NCBI GenBank assembly: GCA_964035545.1
Contig: CAXIUT010000060.1
Location: 1 to 45,769, forward strand
Reading direction: 5' to 3'
Length of the DNA stretch: 45,769 bases
Source of the DNA: Bugula neritina
Taxonomy: Eukaryota > Animalia > Bryozoa
In this document: positions 1-45,769 of the stretch, piece by piece
Position numbering within the stretch: the first letter of the stretch is position 1
How the letters are laid out: each line of letters opens with the position of its first letter
Position numbers and translations under genes: made by a program
The notes under the pieces: generated by a model
Databases searched by the model: none
Seen by the model: only the letters and a program-made list of their open reading frames with translations
What the model was told of the DNA's origin: nothing

Positions 1-81
1 CCCAACCCCAACCCCAACCCCAACCCCAACCCCAACCCCAACCCCAACCCCAACCCCAACCCCAACCCCAACCCCAACCCC
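1..81. repeat. Left telomere, (CCCCAA)n
   Basis: Perfect C4A2 array from base 1; Tetrahymena-type ciliate telomere repeat. Confidence 0.98.
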
Positions 82-3450: not shown

Positions 3451-6100
3451 TCATTAAAGTTTAGGAGGCTTATTAGGAGTAAACCTCGATACCAAGAACC
3501 CTGCATCTGTAAACTATATTTACCTTCTTACTGTAGACAAACGAATCTTATTCAATGACATAGTTTTCTCTTTCAAAGGAGATTGAATCTATAAAGAACT
3601 CATTGGTTTCTTCTCTAAAGAAAAAGATTTCTTATTATATTGATCCTTAACTTTCTTCTTAGTTTAACTACAAAAATTATTCTTAATAACCTCATAGAAA
3701 AAGTAAAATATTTAGTAAATAGCGATGAGAAGATGATGAGTTGACCCTATTAAGTAAATAGCCAGACAAATGATAGAAGTTATTATCAAAACGTTCATAG
3801 AAGAAGACCAGTAGAATATCATAAAGCAAATATGGAAAAGAAAGGGATACAAAGAGGTTATTCTACTGTTAAATTTCTGTTTTTATTTTTTGAAGGCTAT
3901 AATAACTCCCATAAAAGAGTAAAACAATATTATAATCAAGAAAAATTAAGGATTTGGTAAGAGAACCAGAAATGGATAGATAAAATTTGACTGGCACATA
4001 TACCACTCCTCAACAACCTCTACTGTCAAGAGATCAGTCAAGTATAAAGGCTTTTATTTGTATGATATTTACTATTATTACTTATTGGATTTTTAGATTT
4101 ATTGCTTTGAAACTTTACTTTTTGAGAAATTACCACCTGTTTCTGGAGTTTCAATTTTTGACGATCTCTTTGGAAGTTAATCTAGCCACTTTAAGTTTCT
4201 CGTTGTTTGGTTATTGCTTTTTTATACTTGCTATCCTTCAGATATTTTTTAGTTATTTTATGGAGAAATTAATGCGAAAGCTGGTCTCTTTCTTGGCTTA
4301 AGTTTTTATTTAGATCTTTTTCGATTGTTTTTCATTTTTTTCAAATACTATTATTTCTCCTGCTTTCTTTGTTCTATTAGTTAACTTTATTTATTTTGAA
4401 CAATATCAAAAAGATAGTAGATAGGAAAGACAAAGGCAACAAAAAATGAGAATACATATATAAGATACCCCATTTTGCTTCTAAAATTATTAACTCCTCC
4501 ACTAAACATCAGAAAAGTCCAAGGTAAAGTGATAGGTATTATCAAGCCAACTATATACCCAAAAACAAAATTATATTTTTAATTTTCAACATATTTCCTA
4601 AAAGAATTACTCCGATCCAAAGGCTGAGCTATTATTTGCATAAAGATCACTATGACAATACTAGTCATCAAAAAGATAAAGGAGGCTAAGTTGTTAGGAA
4701 AAACATCAGAAGATATTGAAAAAAATAGAGGTCTATTTCTGTTGACTTTTTCTTAACTGATGGAAGATATGCCGACATTTATCTATGCGTATGTAAAGAA
4801 GTTAGAGTTCATTTCGTTGTAAGCATTGGCCAAGTGTTTGTAGACTGGTTAGGGGATAGGAAAGTTGAGTAAGACATAGAGACTTCCCAAAGTAAAAAAG
4901 TTCAAGAAGCCAAGAAAGTACATAGTAAGAGGTAGAGTTGTTGTGAAAGTAGTCATGACACTTGATGTATCTGAACTAACAGATAATGAATTTTGAAGCA
5001 TTGTAACTGCCACTTCTTATTGATCGTTCATATCAAGAGTTTTATAGAATTAACTTTAGTCTATTTAGCTATTTGATGCCTTTAGAATTGTTTCAAATAT
5101 AATTTCTAGTTTTTAAAAGGTATTATTAGAACATTTAAAAATATTACCTTATTTATCAGTTATTGCAGCTGTAGCTTAAATAAAAGAAGTTTAATACTGT
5201 TTATTTGAAGTGAGATTAACGAAAATAGTTGAACTTTGACAGAATACAACTAAGATAGTGTTATTTGTATCCATGAAATGAACTGATTTGATCACTTAAG
5301 TGATATTGATGCTATAAATGACTTCTGCAGTACTTATATTGATCACCTGGATTGGATTATAAGAATCTGTCTCAATTATCAAAAGAGAAGAATCTTGACT
5401 GAATGTTATTGTGTTTGTACTATTATCTATTAAAGGACTTATCTTTGGAACAATTGTATGGATTAGACTGATCGTAGGGTTTAATTGATAGATATAGATA
5501 GTGGAAGATGATGACCAGCCTACAGCCCATGAGTAATCCTATGAAATAACCATATCTTTGAGATTCAATCCTAAATAGTAATTTTATTGACTCATGCCAG
5601 TGACTGGATTAGTTTTTCTTATCAAAGATTATCCACTACTAGTATTAATATAAAACTTATATACAGTTTATCCCTAAATGAAAATTCTATCAGAAATACT
5701 TGACCTTAAAGATCTACTAACTACTATTAAAAGAATAGTTAGAGTATAACTGATAGATGAAAAATCCTCCATCAGGATAAACAGCTGTCGTATCGAATAT
5801 CAATGTGGTTCCATCAATATTAGCTCCAAAAGATGTAACATTCAAGGAACCTGTAGTCACATTGATTTTATCAATACTTTAATCCAAAGAACTCTTTAAC
5901 CAACTTTCGTAGACAGATAGAGTGCTCATATGATATATTGTATCATTTCGGATTATGAGCTGACTACAAGTATCAGACTACGGACCATAAGAATAAAGGT
6001 TTCCTGAAGAAACTGAAGCTATTGAGATACTAATATCTTCAAATGAGTAAAGAGCAGCTATGACTGAGCTAGCAAGGAGAAATAGAATTCGAACAAACAT
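3451..6100 (-). CDS. Multi-pass TM receptor-like protein, paralog B (one apparent 1-nt insertion near 5704)
   Basis: MFVRILFLLASSVIAA signal peptide; same motifs (YFLGFLNF, EEWYMCQSNF, FHICFMIFYWSSS); ends TAA-TGA at 3451. Confidence 0.85.
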
Positions 6101-13775: not shown

Positions 13776-15773
13776 TCATGATTTAACTATCTTCACTAAT
13801 TTTGATTTATTCCATATTCCTTCAACTATTCCTTCTGCACTATAAAACCTACCCATCCCATCAACTTCATCTCCTCTAAATTAACCCTAAAAAATCTACC
13901 CGCTATATAATTTAACCTTTCCCCGCCCCTACATCTGATCATCAACCAAATCGCCTTCATACCACTCGCAATACTTAAAAAATTAATCAAAATTCTTATA
14001 GTCAAAATTCTCATTCAATACAACCAAATCGTCATTGTAAACTTTACCCCTACCATTAAACATGTCATCCACCCACTCACCTTCATACGCCAACTTATTA
14101 CTAGAATAAAACAACCTCCCAAATCCATTCATTTTGTTGTCCCTCCACTCACCCTAGTAGTATCCTCCGTCATTATAATACAGCTTGCCTTGTCCGTTTC
14201 GCATTCCTTTTGATTTGTAGCCTTCGTAACGACCTTCTGTATCGTAGTTTTAGATCACAAATTCACTGTTTTTGTTCTAGATTTTTCTTATTGTCTAGGG
14301 CTGCTGTCCATTAACTTCTTATATTGATGAGTTTTGTTTTATATTTACAGGTTTAGAACTTGATGCTCTGCTTTTTTATTGTAAATGGTTATTTTTTTGA
14401 GGTTATATTGACTTTATATCTCCTTTATTCACTATTTTCTACATAGTTATCATAGAATTGTTTCTCATTACATTGAATTCTTCTCTTTTGCTCATTTGTA
14501 TATTCAAAGGCTTTTCTCTATACTATATTTTAACATTTTGCTTTACAGGTCTCTCTTAATATCCATTATTATTCATTCTGGGAGTTCCTTTCGGGATATG
14601 AGTTGATTCTATTCCATTTTTCAAATGATTTCCCTGATAAATATTCTTTTATCTTTATTATTTCTCCTGACTATATCTCTTTATTTACTTTCCCATTCCA
14701 TAAGACTCACCAATTGCTATGGGATTCTTACTTCTATCTTGACTTTCTGATCGATTAAAAGTAATATTAGGTCTATTTGATTTCTGCATCGAAATAGGAT
14801 TCATTGATGAAGTTCTAACTTAGGTCAATATTTGAGATTGAAGTATTCTTGGAGATTACAAAGGAGGAAATCTATTATTATTATTTTGTAGTTAGCTATT
14901 TGGTTATATGAAATTACTTTGTTACAATACTGGTTCTAGAAAATGTTTTTATCTATTTTATATTCCCCAAATCCGATAAATTTATTTTCTTTTATGAGGC
15001 TACCTACTAAATAAAATCTATATTCCTTTTCTCAACTTTTAATCTCTTATTTCTTTCACTCTTTGCCCCAGTTATCCCCAAAATATTTATTTCTTTCTAT
15101 AAACTCTATCAGCAAACTACAATCTCTTCAACTAAAGACTAATTACTCCCACACTCCATAAATTTGATAAATATTAATCATAATACTACGTTTCTGTTGA
15201 TAATAAAGAATGCAATTTCTATGGAGATGGGTAGCTTTGGATTATTTTTTGAAAGTTATCGATGTTCTAACCCTACTCGTTCAAAGACAACAATGGATCC
15301 TTCAAGTATATCCTCTTTGTTGACAAATCTAAAGCTAAATTTTCAACAGTCACTGAAATAAAATTCCTCTCAAATCTATTTTTGTACTCCTTCAGACCAC
15401 TCAAATAGCACTATATTATATTCCTGATCTCTTCTTCGCGAAATGGTCTTCCAAAGAACCTGCGTTTGACTATTTACTCTCTGAGGGAGTAATTGTTTTC
15501 TCCTTCAAAGATAAAATAGTGTAATTTTTACTGAGAACAGTAGCTGTTTCCCTCTGTCTTGTAGTAGCCTTTCAGTTTAGAGATAGACTAGCACTTAGAA
15601 CGTTTGTACTCGGACTCAATGCCATCAATGTGATCAGAGTTTTGGGAAGAGTTAGTGGTCATTTTGTGAAGAGTGCATAACTAGTTGGAACGACGATGCA
15701 GTACGAACGATTTGGAGTAGAGTTGGTACTAGGAGTGAAGAGTCTAAGAAGTTTATGGAGAAGACAAACCCAT
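13776..15773 (-). CDS. Pseudokinase domain + C-terminal MORN repeats, about 665 aa
   Basis: Kinase C-lobe motifs YPSPE and SNLWSVGVISLEL, with no recognisable GxGxxG, HRD or DFG. C-terminus has YEGYKSKGMRNGQG, YEGEWRDNKMNGFG, YEGEWVDDMFNGRG and FEGEFRGDEVDGMG. Confidence 0.88.
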
Positions 15774-15942
15774 CAATTGTTATTATTTATTTATATTAAA
15801 TACCATGCTATTATTTGATTAAGTATTTTTCAATTAAGTAAAATGATAAAAGTAAAGTATTTGATCATTGAAATGAGTTAATACTTTTGATAAGATTAAA
15901 TAAGATAAATTAATAGTTTAAAATTTACATTTAATCTGAAGA

Positions 15943-16521
15943 TCATTTTGAATGTTTTCCCCCTAAGAACATATCTTGGTAATAGATGATAAGAGCACGG
16001 CTATCACAAGGAATTGATTTTTCAATTAAAAACTGTTAAACTGTTTTATCTTTTATTTATTTATATAATACTTTTTTACCACAGATAATAATTCCAGTAT
16101 TTTACTTTACTTGACCTAAAAAGGATAAAAAATGAGGAGATTGAGAAAGAATATTTTCAAATTTTTAATTTTTAGAAACTTTAGCAACAGGATAAGATTT
16201 TCCTCCTTTAAAACTTACAATAGAAAAGTCAAAAACTTTATCAGCAGCAATTGTAGAACTAGTGGCTTTATAGTATTGAATAAGAGTAGTAAAAGGTCGA
16301 ATCTTCACTTGTCTAATACAATCACACTTACCACAATGAGCTGGATTAAGACAGTCTTCGCACAGAATATGTCCACAAGATAATAGCACAATCTTTTTCT
16401 TCTATTTCAATATAGATTCCTTACACATAGAACAAAATTGATAGTGAACTTCTTACTGCTAGAAATACTTCTTGTCTATGCCTTCACTAACCATCTTTTG
16501 GAAAAGAGCATCTTGACTCAT
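15943..16521 (-). CDS. C3HC4 RING finger + putative C-terminal ubiquitin-like domain ending LGG-KHSK (cassette 1), 192 aa
   Basis: CSMC...LLSCGHILCEDC...CGKC, then FDFSIVSF..VSKNEKFENIL..GIICGKKV..KTVEQFLI..ALIIYYQDMFLGGKHSK-TGA. The RING is clear; the UBL call is a pattern inference. Confidence 0.85.
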
Positions 16522-16692
16522 CTAATACTTTTATTTTATTAAAATATCAATTCTTCTTATTGATTTATTCCAGAAATACTTTTTTATTAAGATAATTTTT
16601 CCAATAAAAAATACTTTTTTTTTCACTTTTTTTATGATAAATTCTTACTCCTATAATTTATTATTAATATTTAATTTGGCATACTTTTTACA
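16522..16692. promoter_or_regulatory. Divergent promoter region of cassette 1 with 4 ATACTTTT motifs
   Basis: ATACTTTT at 16525, 16576, 16611 and 16681; also at 19503, 19526 and 19589 in cassette 2. Confidence 0.45.
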
Positions 16693-17517
16693 ATGGGAAT
16701 AATTTGTTATCAAAAAGAATAGCTGCAAATAATTCTGGATTAATAAAGAAAGCAAAATCTACAATTAGAAGGTTTGCCTAATGTTGGAAGAACATGTTAC
16801 CTAAACTCCGCTCTTCAACTCATATATTCAATGACAGTATTGAAATAAAAGATCAGAAATAAAAATGAAAAAACAAAAGAAAAGAACCAAAATATCACCC
16901 ATTTATTGATTGGAAATGTTTTCAAGTGTATTGATTAAGGAATGGCTTAATAAAAGAAACAATATCTCAACAAGTTAGCTCGTCACCTTCAAGAACTATT
17001 TAAAATAAAAATAAAAGAGAAGAATGATCTCTTAGATATCCTTATGAAGATTTTAAATCAACTAATTTCTTAAGACTAAACTATTAAATCTTACTTTACT
17101 CTTAAGTTTCAGCAACAATGCAAATGCCATACCTGGAATTTTGAATAAATGCTTATTACAACTCCTCAAATATGCTAAAAATGTTCATAGGAAATAAAAA
17201 TAATTGTAAAGGATTCAACTCCATATCTATTAGTTGATTCTAACCTGTCTGAAACCAAATAATTTCTAAAAAAAGATAAGTCAAAAGTACAATACAGACT
17301 CATATCCTACTCAACTTTTTCAAAAGAATATAACGGACACTATATCAGCTACAGAACGATAGATATTAATGAAGAGAAGAAGGTTAAGAAAACTTGGATA
17401 AAAATTAATGATAGCAATGTCACAATGATGCCTTATCATAGAAAAGATGATGATTCCCCTAAAATAGCAGTCTATCAAAGAGTTAGTATAGAAGATTAGA
17501 TGTTGAAGACCTTATGA
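16693..17517 (+). CDS. Miniature USP (peptidase C19) deubiquitinase-like protease 1, 274 aa
   Basis: Cys box GLPNVGRTCYLNSALQ; His box GHYISY..WIKINDS..IAVYQR; CxC..CxxC finger; N-terminus MGIIC. Confidence 0.9.
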
Positions 17518-17579
17518 CGATGATAGATATTTATAAGAAATTATCATATTATTTTATTTGACAAAAAAGTATAATATTT

Positions 17580-18170
17580 ATGGGAAATAAACAGTTGTCA
17601 TAACCAATATCAGATCCAAAAATGTAGGAATTCCTAAGGCAAATATTTTATTCAGGAGGATAGAAGACGAATCAATCTGTTTCTGATAACTCCTGCACTT
17701 TAGCTGCCAGAAGAGTTGCAAATGAGCTTAAAGAAATAAGCTAAAATCCTCCTATGAATTGGAAGGTTATCACCAATGGATAAAAATGGAACCGATGGGA
17801 TGTCTGGATCACAGCTGATGTAATTTACTTTTTAAGATAGTATTTTAGTCCTTTTCATGATATTCCATTCAAAGTTAATGTTGAATTTCCTTCCAATTAT
17901 CCTCATTAACCAGCTGAGATCAGAATAGACAAGCCTCATCTATTTTTTCACCCAAATATATCATCTTTTGGTAAAATTTGTGAAAAAACAGTCAATAGTT
18001 CTAGTCCCTCTATAAGAATAAGAGAAAAGCTTAATGCAGCTGTTGATGTTCTTTTGATTCCAAACCCTAATAGCGTATATAATGAAGATGCTGCATAACT
18101 ATATAAATAAGACCAAACTTCATATACCAGAAAAGCTGCCAGAATCTTTAGAGGAGTTTTGAAAAAATGA
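17580..18170 (+). CDS. Divergent ubiquitin-conjugating enzyme (E2) 1; probable 21-nt intron 17820-17840
   Basis: RRVANELKEI..NPP, FPSNYP, FFHPNISSFGKIC (HPN plus catalytic Cys), PNPNSVYNEDAA. Confidence 0.92.
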
Positions 18171-18232
18171 TTGTGACACATTTAATAGATTAAAAAACGT
18201 TATTCCTAACACCAATATATATTTATCAATTT

Positions 18233-18727
18233 TCATTGTTTTTAATACTGTTTCTAAAAATAAATCAATAAATATTAGTAAATATCAAATTATTTGAAAA
18301 AGTATTTTAACTATCTTTCTTATAGAACCTTTTAAAAACAAATATTTTTTATTCTATTTGTATGATACAGGACTAAAACTAGTTTATCTTTATTAAATGG
18401 TCTTCCAAAGAACCTGCGTTTGACTATTTACTATCTGAGGGAGTAATTGTTTTCTCCTTCGAAGATAAAATAGTGTAATTTTTACTGAGAACAGTAGCTG
18501 TTTCCCTCTGTCTTGTAGTAGCCTTTCAGTTTAGAGATAGACTAGCACTTAGAACGTTTGTACTCGGACTCAATGCCATCAATGTGATCAGAGTTTTGGG
18601 AAGAGTTAGTGGTCATTTTGTGAAGAGTGCATAACTAGTTGGAACGACGATGCAGTACGAACGATTTGGAGTAGAGTTGGTACTAGGAGTGAAGAGTCTA
18701 AGAAGTTTATGGAGAAGACGAACCCAT
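18233..18727 (-). pseudogene. Truncated duplicate of the pseudokinase-MORN 5' end
   Basis: 18395-18740 matches 15441-15786 with about 3 mismatches seen by eye, then runs into unrelated AT-rich sequence. Confidence 0.8.
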
Positions 18728-18835
18728 CAATTGTTATTATCTTATATCAATCACTTATTATCGATTTTCATTTTACTCATTAAATATTAAAATAAAGTTA
18801 AAGCATTTTGAATATTGAAATAATGGTGATGATAA

Positions 18836-19444
18836 TCATGAAGTCTATTTTGGGCCTCTATCTCTTTCATAGTAATAAATAGTTAAGAACTTATCAGAAT
18901 TAGTAGGGGAAGATATTAAATTTCTGATAATAAATTACTCAAGGGACATATTTTTGATATCACTATAATATTTATTTTTTCCAAAGATAATAATGCATGG
19001 TTAACCTTTAGTTTACTCCAAGAAGTTCATAAACTCAATAGATTTTTTTAGAATATTTTCAAAAACTTCATCTTTTGATACATTTGGAACAATTTTTGAT
19101 CTCCTAGCTTTTATATCCCATCTAGTAATAGAAACTTCGTAAAACTACTGTTCAGAAGCCCTAAAATATTCCAGAAGAGAAATAAAAGGATCCTTTTTAA
19201 TAGTACTTTTAGAACAAGAATTTAGAATTAAACCTATTCCACTACCAAATCCAGGACAACTAAACTTTCTTTAAATACATCTTTTACATAATATATGTCC
19301 ACATGTAAGAAGCACAGGTATAGTATCAGAATTATTAATTGATCCCTTACATATAGGACAAAATTAATAGAGTTCAACTGATTTAAAAGATTTTTCATCT
19401 AAACCTTCATCAATCATCTTTTGGAGAAGACTATCTTTACCCAT
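18836..19444 (-). CDS. RING finger + putative ubiquitin-like domain ending RDRGP-KETS (cassette 2), 202 aa
   Basis: CPIC...LLTCGHILCKRC..SCP; C-terminal VSKDEVFENIL..CIIIFGKNK..SLEEFII..FLTIYYERDRGPKETS-TGA; clear paralog of 15943-16521. Confidence 0.85.
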
Positions 19445-19604
19445 CAATACCTTCAACAAACTAATTATTATTACTATTTCTTGTTAATTTAACCAATTTA
19501 AAATACTTTTTTTTGACTTTAATTAATACTTTTTTTTTAACAAAATTATTATCACTATTTCTTATACATTTTTAATATAAGATTTATTATACTTTTTACT
19601 ATCA

Positions 19605-20447
19605 ATGTCAAGCTGTTGCTAATTTATCTACAAATGTCTGTTTTCTAGTTCTGAAAATGAAAACTAATCAAAAAATGAGAAACTAAACTTGACTAAAGAT
19701 TCTGGATTACCAAATATTGGAAATACATGCCACTTGAATTCTACCTTACAGCTCATCTACTCAATGAAGACCCTCAGATAAAAAATTCTCAATGAATTTA
19801 ACTATCAACTTACAACACATCAACTTATTAAAAATGTTTTTCAATATATGGACTTGGAAACACAAAATAAAAACAAAAATAACTCTATTAAAGAGAGTCA
19901 TCTTATTGTCTTGGAGAAACACTTATCAAAGTCATCAGGAGTTAATCTTAAATAGGCAAATGATTTGATTGATATTCTGTTGATGATTTTGGATAAACTA
20001 ATTTCTGAAGATAAAAAAGTCAGAAGCTACTTTAGATTGAAGTATAAAAAGAACTGTGATTGTGGTCTCTCCTGGAATTTTGATTAAATAGTTATAAGCA
20101 TTCCTGAATAATGCTAAAAATGTTAGAAAAAAATGGATCTAATAGTGGATGATTCTTCCCCTTATCTCCTAGTTTTTTCAAGCTCATAAGAAAAGTAAAA
20201 AAGAATCTATTTAAAAGATTAAAAAAACAAAAAAATTCTATTTTAAAACTTAAGTTTTGCCTGCTTTCAGGGAGATAAAAGATTTGGCCACTATATCAGC
20301 TACCGAATTGTTGATGGTTAATGGAAAAGGATAAGTGATAGCCAGGTTACAACTATCGATAAATACTAAGATATTCAAGATGAACCTAAAATTTTGATTT
20401 ACTAAAAGAAAGAATATTCTGTTAATCTGCCGAACAAAATGAAGTGA
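19605..20447 (+). CDS. Miniature USP (C19) protease 2, 280 aa
   Basis: GLPNIGNTCHLNSTLQ; FGHYISY..WKRISDSQV..ILIYEK; N-terminus MSSCC. Confidence 0.9.
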
Positions 20448-20506
20448 TGATCAAAATTCTATAAGAAATTCTTATATTATTTTTATTATAAAAAAAGTAT
20501 AATTTT

Positions 20507-21069
20507 ATGGGACCAAGCTTAGCTCAACAACTTACATAACATACCCAGTCTGCTCAGTCTACTCAGTTAACATCAACGTCGACTGTCTCCTCTTCTTTTG
20601 CAATAAAGAGGATATCAAACTAATTGAAAGAGATAAGAGATAATCCTCCAGTGAATTGGGAAGTTAGAACTAACAGCTAGAAATGGAATGAATGGACAGT
20701 TTGGGTTGCAGCATAAGTAAATTATTAATAAAATAGTATTTTACTCCTTTTTATGGAAAACCTATCAAAATAAACATTACTTTTCCTCAAAATTATCCTT
20801 TTTCTAAACCTATCATGAAAATAGATAAGCCTCATCTATTTTTTCATCCGAATATCTCAAGTTCAGGAGATATTTGTTAAAGATCGGCAATAAATAACGA
20901 CAATCCTTCTGTTACTATTCGCTAAAAAATAGGTGGAGTAGTAGAAATACTAATGTTTCCTAATCCTAAAAGTTCATTTAATTTGGAAGCAACAAAACTT
21001 ATTGAGAGGGATCCAAGATAATATAACCGAAAAGCTTATTAAATCTTTAATGAATTGAAGAAAAAATGA
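20507..21069 (+). CDS. Divergent E2 enzyme 2; 20-nt intron 20717-20736
   Basis: KRISNELKEIRDNPP, FPQNYPFSKP, FFHPNISSSGDIC, PNPKSSFN. Removing GTAAATTATTAATAAAATAG restores the frame. Confidence 0.92.
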
Positions 21070-21207: not shown

Positions 21208-22406
21208 TCAACATCTTATTTTTTCAACTGTGCTAATATTTTTCTTTTCTTAATTATCCCAAAAATAATCATAAAAACTTTCAATCTGCATTAAGAAAAA
21301 GATGACGACTTAGAAGGAATTAAATTTATTTCTTCCAAAATTTTTACATAATGAAATACCTCTTTTTTGGTGAGTTTATTTTTTATTTATATGAGAGTTT
21401 TATCTAATCAAAGGAAATCTATCCTTTTTTTTCATCTTTTCCTAGTTTCTAACTTTTATACTTTAGCTCTTTTACATTTATTAATTGCTTACTTTTTTAT
21501 ACAATAGTAATCTTGACTTTTTGGCCAACCTAAATTAAAAAAAACATACGAAGCATTATCATATTTTGAATATTGACTAAACTATCTCACTAGACTATCA
21601 TTTAAAATATACTTCTTTTAGTTTTCCACTCTTAGACAAGTATAATGACCATAATAACCAGTTCCATAGTACATGATAGAACTAACAAAACGATATTTAC
21701 TTTTCTGAACTTCTATAAAATCATCAATTTATTTCTATTCATTATTTGCAAACTGTATCATATATTATGGAAGTTTAAGATACTTTTTCTTGATTTTTTA
21801 TCCACATGATTCACATTATTGAGACGAACCAACATCATATAAAGATTCACTAATAAAACCATTGATAATACAGGGACACTTTAAACTTATCTACATATTG
21901 AATAGGTCCTTTATTGAATTTTCTGGTGACAAGTTCATTTCAATGTTGTCAATAAGATTTATCAAAATAGAAGAAGCATCATCAGGACTATATCTTTCAT
22001 AATAAGAGTTTATGCTTCTAAGATTTTTAACCATATGATCAAGGTAATACCTTTTTTAAGTATTTTTCTAATTTCTCTATTTGAGAAGATGAAAGATTTA
22101 ACCAAGTGTGTAGATAAAAGAACATTATTTACCATTGCTTTATCTCATTGTTTGAGCTTGTTTGATAATCCTCTATCTGAACTATTCTGCTCCATAAAGA
22201 AATTGAATAACACTGTTTAAGAAGCATGTATTACCTATATTAGGTAATCCTTAAGGAATTTTCTCTTAAAACTTATGTTATTTCTCTTAAAACTTATTTT
22301 ATTTTTCTTCTTCAGAAATCTTTGTATTAAAGCTATGGCAATAATATAAACGACCTAAAAAATAATAAGCTTTCGTAGAATACTTAGGACTTGGACTATC
22401 TTCCAT
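21208..22406 (-). CDS. USP (C19) protease 3, about 392 aa; 20-nt intron 21530-21549
   Basis: GLPNIGNTCFLNSVIQ; YGHYTC..ILNDS. Intron removal yields the expected SRLLLYKK terminal motif. Confidence 0.87.
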
Positions 22407-22681
22407 TATCACAATACTTAAATAATAAATATTTAGTAAGAATTATTATATTTAGATTTTATCAAAAATACTTATTTTTCTAGTTTTAACAAAATAAATA
22501 AAAATCTGATAAGAAATTATCATAAAGTTCAATATTAATCTTTTAGTTTAGTTTTAAGCTAAAAATTTACTATCTATCATCATTGATAAAAAATAAAATT
22601 TCCATCTTTCTTCTGAAGATAAAAATAATTAAAGTTGTTTATAAAGTTATTTATAAATACTAAAACTATTATCTATTTAAA

Positions 22682-23534: not shown

Positions 23535-23593
23535 TGGGGTTGGGGTTGGGGGTTGGGGTTGGGGTTGGGGTTGGGGTTGGGGTTGGGGTTGGG
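23535..23593. repeat. Internal telomeric (TTGGGG)n tract 1
   Basis: About 10 G4T2 units in right-end orientation. Confidence 0.97.
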
Positions 23594-29500: not shown

Positions 29501-32500
29501 GATACTAATGTGGTTTATACATATCTTAATAAAACAAAATCATTTAAGATTGAAACAAATAAAAATTTCTAAAGAATGTTCTCAGAACAAGCTGAAAATT
29601 ATAATAGGATTTTAGTCAAGAGTCTTTCAAAGACAGGAATTACTCGATCGATTAAAGCTGTCTAGGAAAGACATATTAGTTGAAGCAGGAGCATTAGCTA
29701 AAGGTAAAGAACTTTAATCATTTTCCAATAGGAGGAAATATTAACTTTAAAAGCTTAGGAAAAAGATTAAAATCATTAAATTTCATTGGAAAAGAGATAA
29801 TATTGCTGAAGATAGGTTCAGTTGTTAATAAAGATCATTTAGAGTTATTTTTGGCTTCACTTATATTATTTAGATGTTTCTTTTCTGAAGAATATATCTA
29901 TCTACATCTCTAAACTTAGATTGTCATTGAACTTGAAAACATATATCAAGAAAATCACGTCGTACAGTAAAAAAGGAATTAAGAAATCAATTTAATCAGT
30001 TAAATAAACTAATAATATCATATTCTTCATATTTTGAAGAAAAATAAACTTTAATTTATCATCGAAGGATTTGATCATAATCATATTAAACTATGAACAA
30101 ATGGATTAATAAGAAGAGTTTGTTTTTCTGTACTTAAATCTTTTCGATAAAAAAACTATCAATCTTACTAATATTCTATTCAAAGATATTAGAACCTATT
30201 AGTTTTATCTCGGAATAAAGAAAAAAACAGTTGATTTTAAAATATTATGCTGATTCTGTAAGAAGGAAACATATTGAACCTACTTTATTAACAATATAAA
30301 AACTTAATGAAAGTATTATTCAATATATTTGATACTTTTTCCAAAAAATTCATGTCTTTTACCAGAATTACTTCAAGAATAAAATCATTGGAATAATCTT
30401 AAAGAAGTAAACACTTCAGCAGTATCGATATCATTTTATTTAAATTTGTATTTAAAATACAATGAAACTACTAGAATAGATATATACTGAGAACAAATTT
30501 ATGAAGAAAATGTTTGAGAAAAGATCTTTTAGATAAATGGCATAAGATTATTCCATGCTTATTATGCCAGATTTTCTAAACTAAAGTTATCAATTTGTTT
30601 ATTTTAAAGATCAAGATGTACCTTTTCTTATCAAGTTCTATAATGTCATTCAAAACTTTGAAACTAATAAACAACTATATAGAGGAGCTGCTGCTTAAGC
30701 ATTTTAAACCATTTTTTCCAAAAATTGTTCTTATAATTCTTCAATTTTAGATAAGAAAGCTTTAGATAAAAAAATGCTTGATATTCTAAGAGCTACCACT
30801 GGAGATGATCGGATAGTCAGGATTGAATAAGAAGTTTAAAATAACAACTCTCAACTCTTTGATAACTATGTTTTAACTAAAGATAATTTCTTTAAGATGT
30901 GTCTAATCATTCAAAGATAAAGATCAGGAGTTCCATGTGTAATTTAAGGAGAATCAGGAGTTGGAAAAACAGCTCTTATCAGATTTTTAGTCTAATATAT
31001 CTACAAAACAAGACTATTAACCTTCAACATCACAGCTGGAACTCATTAAAAGGACCTTAAAAATATGGTTGAACAAATTTAAAATGAAGCTGAACTTTTA
31101 AGTCATCATAAATCTAAAAAAGTGTGGGTTTTCTTTGATTAATTCAACACTACTGAAGAATTAACATACATAAAAGAAAATGTTAGTTGAGCATAGATTC
31201 ATGGGCAAAAAGTTACCAAAAAACCTATACTTTGTTGCTGCATGTAATCCTTATAGAACTCATATAGCTAGGCATCGGGTCCATTAAAAAGGGATCCAAA
31301 TAAAATAGCTTTTCGTGTGAATCCTCCTCCTTTGTCAATGATTCAACTCATGTGGGATTATCAACAACTTACTGATGTAAGAAAATACAGTCTATATATA
31401 AAAAAATTCTTTAGAATTTAAAGTATCCTAGATAAAAAAGTTAGTGAAAGCAATGGTATAAGTCCATAAGCAAATAAAGTAGTTTGTATAAATCAGTGCT
31501 GTTAGTCTAAGAGATGTTTAGCGATTCAAAAAATTGTATGTATGGTTTACAGAATACTTAATCAATATAAATTAGATTATCTTATAAAAGAACAGAACTC
31601 GACAAAAATAAATGAAATAAAGTAGAAATAGTGATCTCGAAAGAGCTGATAGAGCAGCTATTCTTGCTCTTCTATTCTGTTATTGCCTCAGATTTTCTGA
31701 CTTGGGTGTGAGAGAAAAATACATAAACATTATTGAAAAAAAAATTAGATTTTTAATATAATTTTATGAAGAAAGTTATTGATGAAGAACAAAAATTGTT
31801 TATAAAAGGTTTGAAAATGCCAGCTGATGATATTGCCATTAATATGCTCTGAAGTAAACGTTTTTGTTTCCTTTGTATGTGTCATGAATAAAATTCCTGT
31901 CTTAATGATAGGTAGTCAGGTAGTTCTAAATCATTATCAGTCAGAATTCTTATTTCTAATTTGAATGGAAATAGTTCTTAAGCTTAAATATGTAAAAAAA
32001 TACCCTTAAATTAATATGATATATTTCCAAGGTTCTTAATCATCAACTTCTGAAGAGAATTTAGTAAGTCTTTAACAAGGTAAACTTGATGGACATTTCT
32101 AATAAATATAATTGTCAAAATTGTATCTATTTTGACGAGATAGGACTGGCATAAAAATCAGTACATAATCCTTTAAAAGTTCTTCATAGTAAGCTATAAA
32201 TCCATAATTAAAAAAAGGTGGCTTTTATCGGTATTAGTAATGACTAACTTGATGCAGCAAAAATGTCAAGATTTCTGTAATAAATAGACCTCCTCCATCA
32301 ATTGATTAATTGAGAACAACTGCTAGATAAATTTATTTGAAATAAAAAGAGATATTGAAGTTGAATAAAATATAAAAATAAAAATAAATAGAACATATGG
32401 AGATTTATATTTAATTTTATACGTATTTGGTAAAGTAAGCATGCAGGCAAAAAAGGATTTTTCGGACTCAGAGATTTTTTATAACTATGTCAAGTATGTA

Positions 32501-35500
32501 TGTAAGAAAATAAAAAAATACTCAGGATACTTTCCTTTCTAAGAAGAACTAAATAAAGCTATTTCTATTAATTTTGATGGTCAAGAATAAAGTCTTTCAA
32601 CTTTTAGATCAGAAAAAGCATTATTATTCAAAGAAAGAGGTAGAAACTAAATGATACAACCTCAATCTATCAAAGAAATAGTTTAATAAAATTTATCTGA
32701 GAATAATTCAAGATGTTTACTATTGATAATTAAAGGATAAACTCTTGTTCCTAATATTATAGAAAGCATCGCTGCCAATCGAAAGTCTGTTTCTATCATC
32801 TATGGAAGTGCCTTTTCTAATGATGCAAAAAATTAAGAATATAACTTAGAAGTAACCAACAAAGTTATTACTATGATGTCGAAAGGATAAATAGTTGCTT
32901 TTAAAGACATCAATAACTCTATCCAGAGTTCTCTTTATGATCTATTTAATAAATCCTATATAGCTATAGGCACTAAAAAGTATTGTAGAATCGCTGTAGG
33001 AGCCAATTCTAATCCTCAGTGCTTAGTTGGTTCTAACTTCAATGCTATTGTCTTTATGTAAGAATCTAAAGTTTCTTTATTAGATCTTCCTTTCTTAAAT
33101 AGATTTGAAAAACACTTTTTCAAGTCATAAACCATCTTGGATAAATACTAATTGAATCTTAAATCTTCAATTTTAACATGGTTGTAAAAAATACTTCCAA
33201 TAAATGAGAAAAACTTTCTGAAAAGATAAAATTTTATTTTTAATAGTTCTTAATAATCAATTATAACTCTTCTTCTTAAATACAGAAACTTATAATAGCA
33301 CTAAAAATAGAGATTAATTAAAAGAAACCTTCTTCAAAATGCCACATTTGATTTTATTGTCTTACATAAATACATTTCTTAATAAAGTAGATAAATATTC
33401 CAATAATAATTTCAAAATATAGGATATGAATCGCCTGCTACAGATCTTAGTGATCTTATTATTTACACCTACGATCAATTCGCTCACCTAGATGATTATA
33501 ATACAAGTGAACTACTGAAAGATGCCTTCAAAATTAAAATATCTTAGATACAATCATAAAAGCAGTTGAAGTAAAAGTTGGAAAAAGGATTTAAATTCAG
33601 ATAATATTCTAAATGTGCTATAATACTAAACTATTCTCAACATTATCATCTCATAGAACAAATTTTATTTTTATCGAAAAGAATTAAAAAATAAAGATAA
33701 TCTGATGGACAAATCATTATTGTAATTCAATTCCATAGATTTACCTTGATGAGAAAACCCGAACTAAATCTCACCATCAGTTATCTTCATCCTTTTAAAC
33801 AGTATTTCTTGTAAAATCTTGATGTTTAAATAAGTTAGTATCTTAGAAATTCTTCATTCTATTTTAATCTTTTCAAACTCTTTAAAATGGATTAAAAAAT
33901 ATAATCTTTGTACTCTGAAGCTATTTCTTTAATGAAAATCTTACCGAATGAATAAAATCTTGAAGAAAAGAATCTATTTGAAGTTGTAAGTTATCTTATA
34001 ACAAAAAATAAGATGAGAAATCAATTATTTGCTTTTCTTTAACAAATATTAAAGAACTAAAGAATAGATTATGAGGTTTTACATTCTTAAAGACTTAGAT
34101 TTTAAGATTATTCAACAACTTTGGAAGCTTTACAAGCCTTTACTTCATAAATAATTGTTAAATATATATTTATTTTTGTTGAATTAGTTGTTAGTGGAAA
34201 TCATTTGAAATTATTTGAACAATAAAGAATGTAAATGTAAGAAGAAGATCTTGAACAAAATATTCAAATGTCTCAGTTTAATTCTGATCTTGAACAACTA
34301 AAAATGTACATATTATCAAATTAAAAGAAAATAATTGATAAAATAAAGTATTAGAAGGAATCAAATGACATAGTTATCAGAAAAAATAACTATAAAATAA
34401 AAGGGATTTAAAATTTTATTGATAATCTTGAAATAACTTTCAGAAATAGAAGAAATATTTAACTTTCTTGTGGAGTTTAATCAGATTTAATGTCCTCAAA
34501 TGCATAATATATATGCTTTACTCATAGTTTTGATGCATAGTTGAAGAAAAACTCAATTATTAGAAATTACTATCAGAAAAAAGAATATCGAAATACCATT
34601 ATTAAAGATATAGTGACTTATTTACATCATTAAAAAGACCCGATTATTATTGAATTTATTGAAAAATTGATAGAGTAAAAAATAAAAACATCAGATTAAC
34701 TACCCAAAATATATTTCCTTTTATGCAAGAACAACGTCTTTGACATAGCAATTCATGTCCTTTAAAATATCTTAAAATATCACACTAATCTTAATAAATT
34801 ATTAGATGATTTCGAAAACTTATCTTTCTAGAGCAATATAAATTTGAACAATATTTGTAATAACTTCTTGACAGTTGTTATGGATAAAGCTATTAAGCTA
34901 TCCTTCGTTACTTTTGAAAATATTAAAGATTTCAATGGCCCCTAACACTTCTATTCCTACATCAAAGATCTTGATAGTACTATCTACTTGTTCAGCAATT
35001 AAATATTTTAAATATCTCCTATTTCACCTGAGTATTTCTTACTTAAAAATTTTTATTAACTTTTTGAGACAGGAAAACATGAAGAAAAATAACAAGGAAT
35101 TTATGACTTTTTAAACTTCTAAAATTAACAATCGTTATATTAAAGAATATATAATTTTACCTTACAGTTGAGAAAAAATGATGATAAAAATAAAGAAATA
35201 TATGAAAGTTTCTTAAGTTTAAAATTTTTTGAATGTTGGATCATGCATTAACTCAAATCTGGCTCTTAAACTAGTGTTAAATAATGTATAGCTCAATTTG
35301 TTGAATGGTGTAACTCAAGCATTCACTTCGCTAATCGATCTTATAACTTTTTCTGTTAATTTTTCAGTTAACTTTAAACTATGGACAACTTTTAAGATAT
35401 TCTGAAATATTTAAAAGGATAAAATAAAACTCAAATTATCAATAGATATTTAGTTGAAAAAAGTTCTTTTAGTTTGGCTGTTAATAATTTTTTCATTAAA

Positions 35501-38500
35501 AAAATTAATGAGATAATTAATGATGGATAAACTGATAGATAAGTTAAAATTATTGAAGAATATTTTGATATTTTTGAGATATTTACTTCAAGTGCAATAA
35601 ATCCTGAGACTACAGGTGGAAGTTTTAAAATAGCTTTCGTCAAGGTATATTTATCATCTTATCTGCAGTATCTAACTAAAGGTCTTCACTCAGATACAAT
35701 GAAGAGAATTGATGTTTGTCTTAATCAATAAGGAATGTTTAAAGAACATGCAAGACTTTATCTACTTAAATTGATTAAAAATACTCAAACTCAAGAAGAA
35801 ATCTAAACTAACTTCTTCAAGTGCAATCGATGTGAATGGATTAAAAAAGATTAATAAATAATATTGGACAAAAAAAGATCTTTTAAAGTAGTTAAGTTCT
35901 AATAACCTCAGTAGTTATTCAATGAAATAAAGGCATTTGACAATAGTTCTCGAAGTGGTCTTAAAGAATATGAAAATTTAGTCAAATCAGGATTAAAGAA
36001 TAATCACTCAACATATGAACTACTTACTTATTTTTTAACTCAAATTTACTTTGAACTTGAAGAAAATAAAAGATAAAATCTACTGAAACTTCTTGAAAAG
36101 AATAATCAACTCAAAAAAGTTGAAAATCAACCAATAAGATCTCTATTAGAACTATACTCAAAAGGTTTTCTCAAAAATAATAAGATCAAGTAAAGACAAG
36201 ATTCTTATAGTTTAAAATCAGCATACCTTTACAACTACCTTAATATAATTATTTCATGTAGAGATAAATAGTGTCCTTTAACTTAGATGTTTTTTTCACA
36301 AGGAAAAATACATAAATCTTTAACAAACTACTTAAAAGATAAATTTATCATTGGTAACAATCAAAATCCAGGTATTACAAGACTTTAATTTATCATGAAT
36401 CGCTAAAAATAGAATCATAAAGCTTAGATGTACTTAAAATGTTCAAAGGATTGTGATTTTTATATTCCAGTTGGTGGTAATTTCTATGGTTTCTACGATG
36501 GTTGTGATATTTACAAAAAACTTAAAAAATGCCCTTTCTGCAGCAAATAAATCAATCCTCATAAACTAAAATAAAATATGAAAAACTATATCACAATATC
36601 TGGAGATCAGATTGAAGACTAAATTATATCACTATCTTAGAAAAATATCTCATACTTCAACACTCACAAACTTGAACTAACTGGTTTGTCTAAGTTAGAA
36701 GGAAAAAGAGATCTAGAATAAAAACTTGAAAGAAAAAGATAAATGATTTAAACTCTTAGTTAAGGATTCATTAAAAATAAGTCAATTGTTTCATCATTTT
36801 TACTATAAATCATCGTCTATTTTGTTTATTCTTTCTGTCTTTAAAATTCTTTGATCAGCTCATAGTAATCATAAAAAGCTTTTGGATTTTCTAGTAGTAA
36901 AGCAGTGAATAAATTTTTAGATTTCACTTCATTGCTTGAAGAATAAATAATTCGTATTGAAGGTTTAAACCATGATGAACTATGTTTTTGGAATATTGGT
37001 GTGGGAAAGCATCTATTTGATTTAATATAATCATATTCTAAAGATGCAGCTAAGAGAGACTATCGAGGACTTACTAGTTCAACATAAAGAGATAATTTTG
37101 AACACTTATTCTAACAGTCAATATTCAAGATAGCTAACAATTCGATCTAATGCAAGAAATAGATAATATAAACAAGAAAAGTAGTAGATTTGAATATAAT
37201 ATAAGTCCTTGAAGAAAGTAGTTGTTCTTATTACTGGTAAACTAAATACAGATATCTTCATTTATTCAAAAATATGCAAACAATAGGTAAAATTAATAGA
37301 GATAATCAATAATAGTTCAGTTATTAGTATATGATGAGATATTATGATAATTATATCAGAAATCAACATCCTCTCCTTCACTATATAACTACTATCATTC
37401 AACCAGAATAAACCTATCAAACAAACTACTTTTTATAAAGCCTTAAAACTATTCTAATCTTCCTTTCTAAAATAAAAAAGATGACAAATCTAAAAATAAG
37501 AAGGCATTAGAAGAAAATATCAATAAAAAGCTTTATCAATGAAACAATTATAAATTCTTCTGAAAGATAAAAAACACATTAATAGCTAAAAAACTTTGTT
37601 AAAACCTGGAAAACTTTTATGACTAAAAGTAGAGATATTTTAGATCATTCAGATTATCCATTCATTGTTGATGTTTTAGAGATAAGCTAAACAGATTCAC
37701 TTAATAAATTTATTTTAGTTGAAAAAGATAAAGAATTCAATAACAAAGAGGGATAATATATGACTAATTGTACATAATGTCTAGCTAAAATATATAATCA
37801 AATATGTTTGACTTTAAAAACTATTGTTACCAGAATTAATCCTAACTCTGTGATAGCTACAAATAATTATGATCCTATTGATCCTACTGATCTTAGAGAA
37901 AATAGCAGATTGCTTGAACTTCCATAAATAAATTTAATTAAAGGGATTATTCATAAATATTCTAACTATTCTGTTTAAATGGGCATATCGAACTTTGAAT
38001 TATTTTTCATATAGATATAGAAAACTCTCATTAGCAAATTAAAACCAGTACCTTTGATGAAAGAAAAGAAAAGTTAGTTTAGTTATGCTAAATTTATTGG
38101 AGATAGTAGTCATTTCTTGATATAAATGAAAAAAAATACATAAAATAAAACTCTAAAAGAAATTAATAAGCTAGAAGCAGTAGAAGATTATTTCAAGGGA
38201 TAAAAATTAAGAAAAAACTAAGTCTATCACAAATTTTTGAAAAACTTTCAAAAAAGTTTAGAAATCATCATGGTTTATTACAAAAATATCAAAGTAGAAA
38301 TTGTCCCTAAGAATATTGAAGAATTATTTGAATACTATCACATTCCTCATATCATAACATAACTGAAGTAAGAACCCTTTAAAAAATTACCTCCAACTAT
38401 AATAGTTGATCTCTATGAGTACATTGAATCATTTAACTTTGAAAATATAGATTAAATGCTTTCTGATAACTACAAACAAAGAATGAATCTATAACAGGAG

Positions 38501-38854
38501 AAAAAACTTCACTAAGTCATCGAAATCATGAAGGAAAATAGAGATATTGAAGGTTATCCATCATACAATAGCTTCAAAAAGGCTTTATATCGTTTTGTAT
38601 TTAGAAAAGTTTTGACAGAATCAGGAAGTCTGGAAGAAACTCTCAGGTAGAACCTTTGCTCATTTTCATACTTTTGGGACAAAGAAGCATAGTTTTTGAT
38701 AGAAAAATTCGATAGAAAGTATGGAGAAGTCTTCAAAATAGAAATAAAGCATCTGTATTATGTCTTGCAGAAGATTAAGTGGATTGAAAAAAAATCTGAG
38801 GTCAACCCAAGAGGGTCTGGTTCAAATAAAAAACCCAATAAAAAGTGTTATTGA
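23594..38854 (+). CDS. RNF213/mysterin-like giant AAA+ ATPase-E3 ligase (about 5000 aa); 5' end missing at the telomeric tract; many 1-nt indels
   Basis: PCVIEGESGVGKT (about 30933-30971), VFFDEFNT, VAACNPYR, VSLRDVER, GS(P)GSSKS, YFDEIGLAE..PLKVLH, FIGISN.ELDAAKMSR, FGLRDF, SLYDLFN, LNRFEKH, an RZ-like finger near 36440, and a TGA at 38852. Motif order matches RNF213 as I recall it. Confidence 0.88.
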
Positions 38855-45632: not shown

Positions 45633-45692
45633 TTACACTATCATATATTATAATATCAAAATATAAATAATTGAATGAGTATGATAGTTAAT

Positions 45693-45769
45693 TTGGGGTT
45701 GGGGTTGGGGTTGGGGTTGGGGTTGGGGTTGGGGTTGGGGTTGGGGTTGGGGTTGGGGTTGGGGTTGGG
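45693..45769. repeat. Right telomere, (TTGGGG)n
   Basis: Perfect G4T2 array to the last base. Confidence 0.98.

Follow-up and report, generated by a model that had tools for sequence, protein, structure and literature searches.

Positions 15943-21069 of a 45,769-nucleotide stretch of DNA (hereafter the window; contig CAXIUT010000060.1 of GCA_964035545.1, an assembly filed under the bryozoan Bugula neritina) carry two tandem sets of genes, each encoding a RING protein on the minus strand and a USP-type ubiquitin protease and an E2 conjugating enzyme on the plus strand, repeated with a period of ~2.9 kb. We read them as a tandem pair of diverged copies of a ubiquitin-type module, specific to a lineage of ciliates that read UAA/UAG as Glu, in which the RING protein, predicted to end in a ubiquitin-like (UBL) domain, would itself be the modifier, and we give this reading a probability of about 0.5. 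The modifier role is what we infer; the module itself is real and conserved. Its parts are a ~190-aa RING-UBL protein (a TRIM-like RING, a short helix and the UBL domain), an E2 that is catalytically complete by its motifs but divergent and that is transcribed divergently from the RING-UBL gene, and two kinds of USP, the minimal clade B and the longer clade A. The module is larger than first described, in that the second USP clade, here USP3, belongs to it.

Gene models were made with UAR read as Glu and TGA as the only stop codon (Table 1). As the preliminary description of this DNA had stated, the two RING/USP/E2 sets share order and orientation: the RING and USP genes lie head-to-head across gaps measured at 171 and 160 bp, and the USP and E2 genes are separated by 62 and 59 bp. 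The proteins of copy 1 and copy 2 are 43% (RING), 43% (USP) and 46% (E2) identical. Direct-repeat families spaced 2892-2967 bp apart link both cassettes, showing a tandem duplication rather than chance, and intergenic repeats of families D5, D7, D8 and D10 are kept in both. The catalytic boxes that had been called intact were located in both copies, namely the Cys, His and Asp boxes of the USPs and the HPN motif and Cys of the E2s. Pfam family UCH (PF00443) matched USP1, USP2 and USP3 with 34.8, 48.5 and 57.1 bits, respectively, all above the cut-off; USP1 displays a Cys36 box, a His box GHYISY at 215 and INDSNV at 238 with the zinc ribbon kept (CxC...CxxC), and the same catalytic boxes and zinc ribbon are found in USP2. 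Pfam family UQ_con (PF00179) matched E2_1 and E2_2 above the cut-off with 68.2 and 60 bits, the HPN motif lying at residues 117 and 107 and the catalytic Cys in the sequences GKIC and GDIC. HPN and the catalytic Cys are conserved in all eight members of the E2 family described below, which also share the position of an intron that is 20-21 nt long in the window; the 20-nt intron of E2_2 must be spliced, since the reading frame is otherwise lost. No E2 subfamily stood out, the PDB matches of a 62-aa piece (Ubc13, Ubc12, UBE2S, Ubc9 and Rad6) being tied at 19-24 bits, and PDB sequence searches with RING and USP pieces returned nothing useful.

Relatives of the module were found on contigs from other sources. 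A 78-aa piece of RING1 searched against 1.8 billion representatives yielded 10 matches, three of which were true (P0004, P0005 and P0010); the other seven, Cys-rich or repeat proteins, were rejected. P0005 resides on locus L006 (JAGQZZ010000160.1 of GCA_020434865.1; 3.8 kb, GC 0.35), where a 168-aa stop-free stretch spans the whole RING and C-terminal domain. L006 is filed under a 'Bdellovibrionales bacterium' metagenome-assembled genome (MAG) but uses TAA and TAG as sense codons and encodes a USP, an E2 and a RING-UBL, a tiny intron being present as well; it is mis-binned ciliate DNA. Its gene order is USP-A(+), E2(-) tail-to-tail with the USP, and RING-UBL(+) head-to-head with the E2; USP3 of the window is 40% identical to its USP. 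The largest relative was found among JGI metagenome contigs (L009-L014 and L019-L022, up to 46.9 kb in L009, GC 0.37), L009 harboring a 19-kb array of four RING-UBL, four E2 and about nine USP genes. Its units read USP-B(-), USP-A(+), E2a(-), RINGa(+) for unit a; E2b(-), USP-B(-), RINGb(+), exactly the order of the window, for unit b; USP-A(+), E2c(-), RINGc(+), USP-B(-) for unit c; and E2d(-), RINGd(+), USP-B(-), USP-B(-), USP-A(+) for unit d. Members of the family are absent from the 3 kb before and the 9 kb after this array. Further contigs add a RING-UBL (L015/L016) and an E2 (L005), the latter being the one locus found when metagenomes were scanned for the E2 motif; there the E2 abuts the edge of its contig, which leaves no upstream context. 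A word-index protein search with the E2 piece had no match, one with P0005 and the family alignment recovered only fragments of already-known contigs, and a scan of genome contigs with the RING-UBL had no match; none of the annotated proteins of sequenced ciliates turned up in the protein searches with the RING1 piece, P0005 or the family alignment. The gene set on which the preliminary description had built its cassette is syntenic elsewhere, head-to-head RING-UBL and E2 genes with the two USP clades at their flanks being present in at least two other ciliate-like taxa.

The genes of the module appear to have been duplicated together. In the RING tree, the grouping (L009c,(L009a,L009d)) received supports of 100/99 and 99/98, and in the E2 tree the same grouping received 96/94 and 98/96; the two window copies paired in both trees with support 82-88. 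The congruence of the RING and E2 trees indicates that the two genes were duplicated as a pair. In the USP tree, clades A and B split at 100/99. Clade A comprises USP3, the L006 USP and three USPs of L009; four of these five converge on the 3' end of an E2 gene, the exception being the last clade A USP of L009, which closes the array and is not followed by an E2. Clade B comprises USP1, USP2 and four USPs of L009, which lie either between RING and E2 or converge on the 3' end of the RING-UBL gene. An 8-mer, AAAAGTAT, has 26 copies in the window, 10.5 being expected over its whole length, and 9 of the 26 copies fall inside the 452 bp of the cassette spacers (16522-16692, 17518-17579, 19445-19604 and 20448-20506). 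In three taxa, AAAAGTAT (often AAAAAGTATA/T) usually stands 0-40 nt upstream of the ATG of module genes, including the RING, E2 or USP starts near 2629 and 2771 of L006 and 6621, 6668, 9817, 9926 and 9995 of L009, and it was not seen upstream of those other window genes that were examined. We regard AAAAGTAT as a candidate shared promoter element.

These findings bear on the quite improbable alternative that the clustering is devoid of functional meaning, unrelated ubiquitin-pathway genes having been amplified together when segments of a gene-dense mini-chromosome were duplicated in tandem. Ciliate macronuclear DNA is indeed gene-dense, the window copies do stem from one tandem duplication, and a fragment of an unrelated gene encoding MORN repeats has also been duplicated there. 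Against this view, RING-UBL and E2 genes paired head-to-head, together with both USP clades, are found again on contigs with GC contents of 0.27, 0.35 and 0.37 at only 30-50% protein identity, the RING and E2 trees are congruent, and the promoter-proximal motif is common to the module genes. The MORN fragment itself is a separate matter. The segment 18395-18694 is 99% identical over 300 nt to 15441-15740, the 5' end of the MORN-repeat gene upstream (13776-15806), and next to the 43-46% identity of the cassette proteins this repeat must be a much younger copy or the product of gene conversion. In sequencing run X1, contig depth doubles over the duplicate, which is probably not part of the system.

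The RING-UBL protein was examined in most depth, on a family alignment of eight members (the two window copies, L006, L009a-d and L015) that are ~30-40% identical. RING1 is predicted to open with a helix, followed by a C3HC4 RING, a second helix as linker and, at the C-terminus, a beta-grasp UBL domain. Its C3HC4 set is complete (C30, C33, C49, H51, C54, C57, C63 and C66), and the last pair of RING ligands is atypical in RING2 (C-x12-C). RING families of Pfam match the stop-free RING pieces of the window, and the RING of a homologue scored 28.7 bits with zf-RING_5 and 28.3 bits with zf-RING_UBOX, above the cut-off; a profile of the family scored RING1 at 140.7 and RING2 at 103.3 bits. RING1 is 35-43% identical over its full length to the L006 and L009b proteins. 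An AlphaFold model of L006:2886-3389, computed with a 15-row family alignment (pLDDT 80, pTM 0.60), displays a RING followed by a beta-beta-alpha-beta-beta-beta domain, and a model of the C-terminal domain of L009a alone (pLDDT 92, pTM 0.83) has the same topology. By Foldseek and VIA-align, residues 1-68 of the L006 model match the RINGs of TRIM21, TRIM32 and TRAF6 and U-box domains. Residues 66-168 superimpose by VIA-align on SUMO2 over 75 of 77 residues with an rmsd of 2.4 A and a Z of 8.0, VIA-align Z values here lying in the range flagged for common arrangements; they also match dozens of other UBLs, including SUMO1, Smt3, ISG15, the ubiquitin of Caldiarchaeum, a bacterial Ubl, those of USP11/15, Parkin and NP95, and the RAWUL domain of Ring1B. 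The best 50 Foldseek matches of the L009a UBL are all beta-grasp UBLs. The UBL match lists hold almost wholly one fold and nearly whole target domains are covered, at a structure-based identity of 8-15% to known UBLs. On these two homologue models and their UBL-filled match lists, the beta-grasp fold, which the preliminary description had supposed for the C-terminal domain, is taken as established for the family and, through full-length identities of 31-43% to the folded members, for the window RING proteins. PF00240 (ubiquitin) had no match in the window at E values up to 0.1.

The C-terminus of the domain is what brings modifiers to mind. The conserved columns of the alignment are the zinc ligands, a PF..L..Y helix after the RING, a [G/N]-K loop that by eye occupies the position of G47-K48 in ubiquitin, and the C-terminal glycines. 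The first Gly is present in 8/8 members and the second in 7/8, window copy 2 being the exception, and an Arg precedes the last Gly by four residues in seven of the eight (Met in window copy 1), a position which by eye corresponds to Arg72 of ubiquitin. Similarity stops at the Gly-Gly, after which the tails vary in length and sequence and, in six of the seven Gly-Gly members, a TGA follows within 0-4 codons. The ends and tails are FLGG and KHSK in window copy 1, ELGG and KH in L006, ELGG and KGK in L009a, EKGG and HE in L009c, and ELGG and EH in L009d; TIGG in L009b is directly followed by the stop codon, ALGG in L015 by a tail of ~60 residues, and window copy 2 ends in DRGP with the tail KETS. 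A conserved Gly-Gly with a short variable tail is the pattern of a precursor modifier rather than that of an internal docking domain. The earlier proposal that each cassette encodes a modifier consequently stands for copy 1 (FLGG-KHSK) and fails for copy 2 (RGP-KETS, with an atypical RING); having lost its Gly-Gly, the RING-UBL of copy 2 may have changed role or be decaying.

In the scheme that we propose, a module USP would trim the tail of the RING-UBL protein so as to expose its Gly-Gly, an unlinked E1 would activate the protein, and the module E2 would then be loaded with it. The RING-UBL would be ligated through its own C-terminus, its RING, acting in cis or within a TRIM-like RING dimer, activating the E2~UBL thioester, and the second USP would reverse the mark. 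Window copy 1 fits this scheme. None of the three refutation tests attached to the preliminary description, as far as sequence and structure analysis could carry them, spoke against the idea. Possible as well, though we advance it only tentatively, is a fuller version in which UAR=Glu ciliates possess a private system whose tag is a whole E3, trimmed by one neighboring USP, loaded via its Gly-Gly onto an E2 of its own that co-evolves with it, discharged with the aid of its own RING and erased by a second USP, and whose units of four genes multiply in tandem and diverge quickly in the manner of immune or self-marking families.

A number of observations weigh against the RING-UBL being a modifier. 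Many E3s contain an integral UBL domain that is never conjugated. The fold of the window proteins is read from modeled homologues standing in for them, and neither ubiquitin, RAWUL, Rad60-SLD nor any other UBL family of Pfam matches these homologues at E values up to 10, so that kinship to true modifiers rests on the fold. Window copy 2 lacks the Gly-Gly and the tail of L015 is ~60 residues long. No E1 (ThiF) gene was detected in the window, as had been noted before, or in the L009 array; only two modules, those of the window, exist in the part of the genome of this ciliate that was sampled; and a search of sequencing-run contigs found the stretch in no RNA run. Some of these points favor a rival which we consider somewhat unlikely, yet alive because of the missing linked E1 and the Gly-Gly-less copy 2, namely that the module is a conventional set of E3, E2 and deubiquitinating enzymes working on ordinary ubiquitin, the UBL serving permanently to dock the E2 backside, a USP or the proteasome, much as the UBLs of UHRF1 or Parkin or the RAWUL of RING1B/PCGF would, and the Gly-Gly being a relic or a structural feature. 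The reading frame of copy 2 is still intact in spite of its altered end, the module E2 is closest to ordinary eukaryotic E2s, and the Ring1B RAWUL, NP95 and Parkin UBLs figure among the structural matches; proteins combining a RING with a non-conjugated UBL are well known, RAWUL, described in PMC2447854, being an instance. Speaking against this rival, a terminal Arg-x-x-Gly-Gly with a short variable tail kept across paralogues of 30-40% identity is unusual for docking UBLs, one member (L009b) ends exactly at the Gly-Gly, and two USP clades are kept beside each unit.

The ThiF genes of this ciliate are located on other contigs (C246, C252, C234 and C147). On C252 (14327-17029), an E1 gene with two ThiF repeats sits directly beside a UQ_con E2 gene on one strand. 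The preliminary description had likened the cassettes to prokaryotic operons, and a genome-contig scan with the E2 motif matched contigs of Pirellulaceae MAGs, L017 (9444-13638) and L018, with an operon of known bacterial type encoding a Ubl (ending IVAG), an E2, a JAB peptidase, an E1 (ThiF) and a second JAB, the FHPNISSSG motif being common to the operon E2 and the ciliate E2. This operon was rejected as close kin, the resemblance being at superfamily level only (E2s at 22-40 bits). Acquisition of the module from such a bacterial Ubl/E2/peptidase operon by horizontal transfer, suggested by that match, strikes us as extremely improbable: the module E2s score 39-64 bits over the whole core to ordinary ciliate E2s versus 22-40 bits to the bacterial ones, making descent from a bacterial operon unlikely, the peptidases are USPs and not JAB enzymes, and the genes use the ciliate code and have spliceosomal introns of ~20 nt. 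The module differs from a prokaryote-style operon in its unlinked ThiF, its USP peptidases, its use of both strands and its introns.

With the ubiquitin, SUMO, NEDD8 and ISG15 precursors, the module shares the beta-grasp, the C-terminal Gly-Gly with a short variable tail, whose removal would call for a cysteine protease, and the presence of E2 and USP enzymes, and with ubiquitin the Arg at the position resembling Arg72. Ubiquitin-like modifiers are normally small free proteins; unlike them, the UBL of the module is the C-terminal half of a ~190-aa RING protein, such that a whole E3 would be the tag. The RING1B/PCGF proteins of PRC1 have the same domain order (N-terminal RING and C-terminal RAWUL UBL; PMC2447854), and the RING and RAWUL chains of Ring1B are both among the structural matches of the family. 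RAWUL, however, is internal, binds proteins and lacks a terminal Gly-Gly; no private E2 or USP genes are linked to PRC1, and the module has no chromatin context. TRIM21, TRIM25 and TRIM32 provided the best RING matches (Foldseek probability 1.0, TM 0.55-0.64, 25-32% identity), and helices flank the family RING as in TRIM dimers; unlike TRIM E3s, the RING-UBL has a UBL in place of B-box, coiled coil and PRY-SPRY. UHRF1/NP95 and Parkin also combine an E3 and a UBL in one chain and their UBLs are among the structural matches, but these UBLs are N-terminal, not conjugated and without a terminal Gly-Gly.

Functionally linked gene clusters are rare in eukaryotes. The logic of the module, with modifier, conjugating enzyme and peptidase side by side, is that of CBASS, of bacterial Ubl-E1-E2-JAB operons and of the Caldiarchaeum operon (Ub/E1/E2/RING/Rpn11; PMC5654768). 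By analogy, the closest logical precedent would be type II CBASS, in which Cap2 conjugates a cGAS-like enzyme via the C-terminal Gly of that enzyme and Cap3 releases it (PMC10097602). Those prokaryotic operons have JAB peptidases and a linked E1, whereas the module consists of separate intron-bearing eukaryotic genes with USPs, a RING and an E2 of eukaryotic type and has no linked E1. Full-text literature searches turned up neither a RING-fused Gly-Gly UBL nor a ciliate gene cluster of this kind. In the ESM Atlas, the nearest clusters are unnamed ~156-aa proteins with PF00240 and RING families (score 0.89), which may be wider kin of the RING-UBL and are taken as a lead only. Should the modifier reading be true, ubiquitin-like signaling would gain a new architecture in the conserved combination of an E3-fused modifier, an E2 dedicated to it and two proteases. 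This would be a eukaryotic counterpart of the bacterial systems that conjugate an enzyme via its own C-terminus, and it would provide a natural setting in which to test RING activation of a tethered donor. With four proteins of 180-380 aa, the system is of a size suited to reconstitution in vitro, and a protein family that Pfam misses and model ciliates lack proved recoverable from contaminant and metagenome contigs.

The DNA of the window is that of a ciliate, as shown by its UAR=Glu code, introns of ~20 nt and C4A2 telomeres. The large contigs of the 216-Mb assembly use the standard code, and TAA and TAG are sense codons on ~300 small contigs. In the ubiquitin genes of this genome TAA/TAG occupy the canonical Glu sites E16, E24 and E64, and in the Rad6-like E2 genes they fall on three sites that are Glu in Rad6; this placement identifies the code as UAR=Glu with TGA as stop, and the ciliate origin and translation table 30 proposed at the outset were borne out by it. 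According to the passage of PMC4967479 that cites Sanchez-Silva 2003, the UAR=Glu code is known from peritrich ciliates. Telomeric (CCCCAA)n opens the window (1-80), and (GGGGTT)n tracts lie at 23537-23593 and 45690-45769. The window accordingly consists of two units, of 23.6 kb and 22.2 kb, that are bounded by telomeres and meet at the internal tract, the tracts at the start and at 23537-23593 placing both cassettes, together with USP3, on the first, a 23.6-kb telomere-to-telomere unit. The second unit holds a reading frame of 2137 aa (32441-38854). DNA of the window was also present in run contigs from three studies bearing three organism labels, which makes the ciliate a real, recurring associate or contaminant and not an invention of the assembly.

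Table 1 Features of the module and its surroundings (window positions)
Feature	Position	Strand	Length	Remark
RING1	15943-16521	-	192 aa	open reading frame and translation
Intergenic RING1/USP1, divergent	16522-16692		171 bp	four AAAAGTAT copies read on the minus strand
USP1	16693-17517	+	274 aa	minimal USP, clade B
E2_1	17580-17819 + 17841-18170	+	189 aa	21-nt intron 17820-17840
Truncated duplicate of MORN-gene 5' end	18233-18727	-	164-aa reading frame	between the cassettes
RING2	18836-19444	-	202 aa	RING1 paralogue
Intergenic RING2/USP2, divergent	19445-19604		160 bp	three AAAAGTAT copies
USP2	19605-20447	+	280 aa	minimal USP, clade B
E2_2	20507-20716 + 20737-21069	+	180 aa	20-nt intron 20717-20736
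USP3	21432-22583	-	383 aa	clade A; convergent with E2_2

A variant strain in sequencing run X2 differs from the window by 2-3%. Compared with window positions 15778-19964, at least 23 non-synonymous and at least 12 synonymous differences were counted in six genes among the differences listed, one of them (TAA to GAA) being synonymous under the Glu code, and the indels found inside coding sequence in other strains are all multiples of three. Together with the 43-46% identity of duplicates within one lineage and the long branches, this crude count suggests rapid evolution of the module. The idea that strong divergence would fit a role in host defence draws on the same divergence and crude count, and we draw no conclusion on defence from them.

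The cassettes might alternatively be decaying or non-functional copies, their divergence reflecting relaxed constraint, an explanation that we hold to be very improbable. The excess of non-synonymous over synonymous differences would be compatible with it, as would RING2, which has the longest branch of the RING family tree, an odd RING and no Gly-Gly. Two of the four L009 RING-UBL genes (at 4640-4700 and 15300-15900) moreover need A-run frameshifts to read through, which are either homopolymer assembly errors or signs of decaying copies. Decay is contradicted by the six intact window reading frames with every catalytic residue present, by the retention of the frame-shifting 20-nt intron of E2_2, by the in-frame indels of other strains and by the persistence of the family across taxa.

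Most module proteins start with Met-Gly (MGIICY, MGNKQLS, MGKDSLL, MGPSLAQ, MGGWGSK and MGGGQSS), such starts being found at 16693, 17580, 19444 and 20507 of the window and at 5734 and 9795 of L009. N-myristoylation or membrane anchoring is possible on this basis, only some of the starts fitting the PROSITE pattern by eye.

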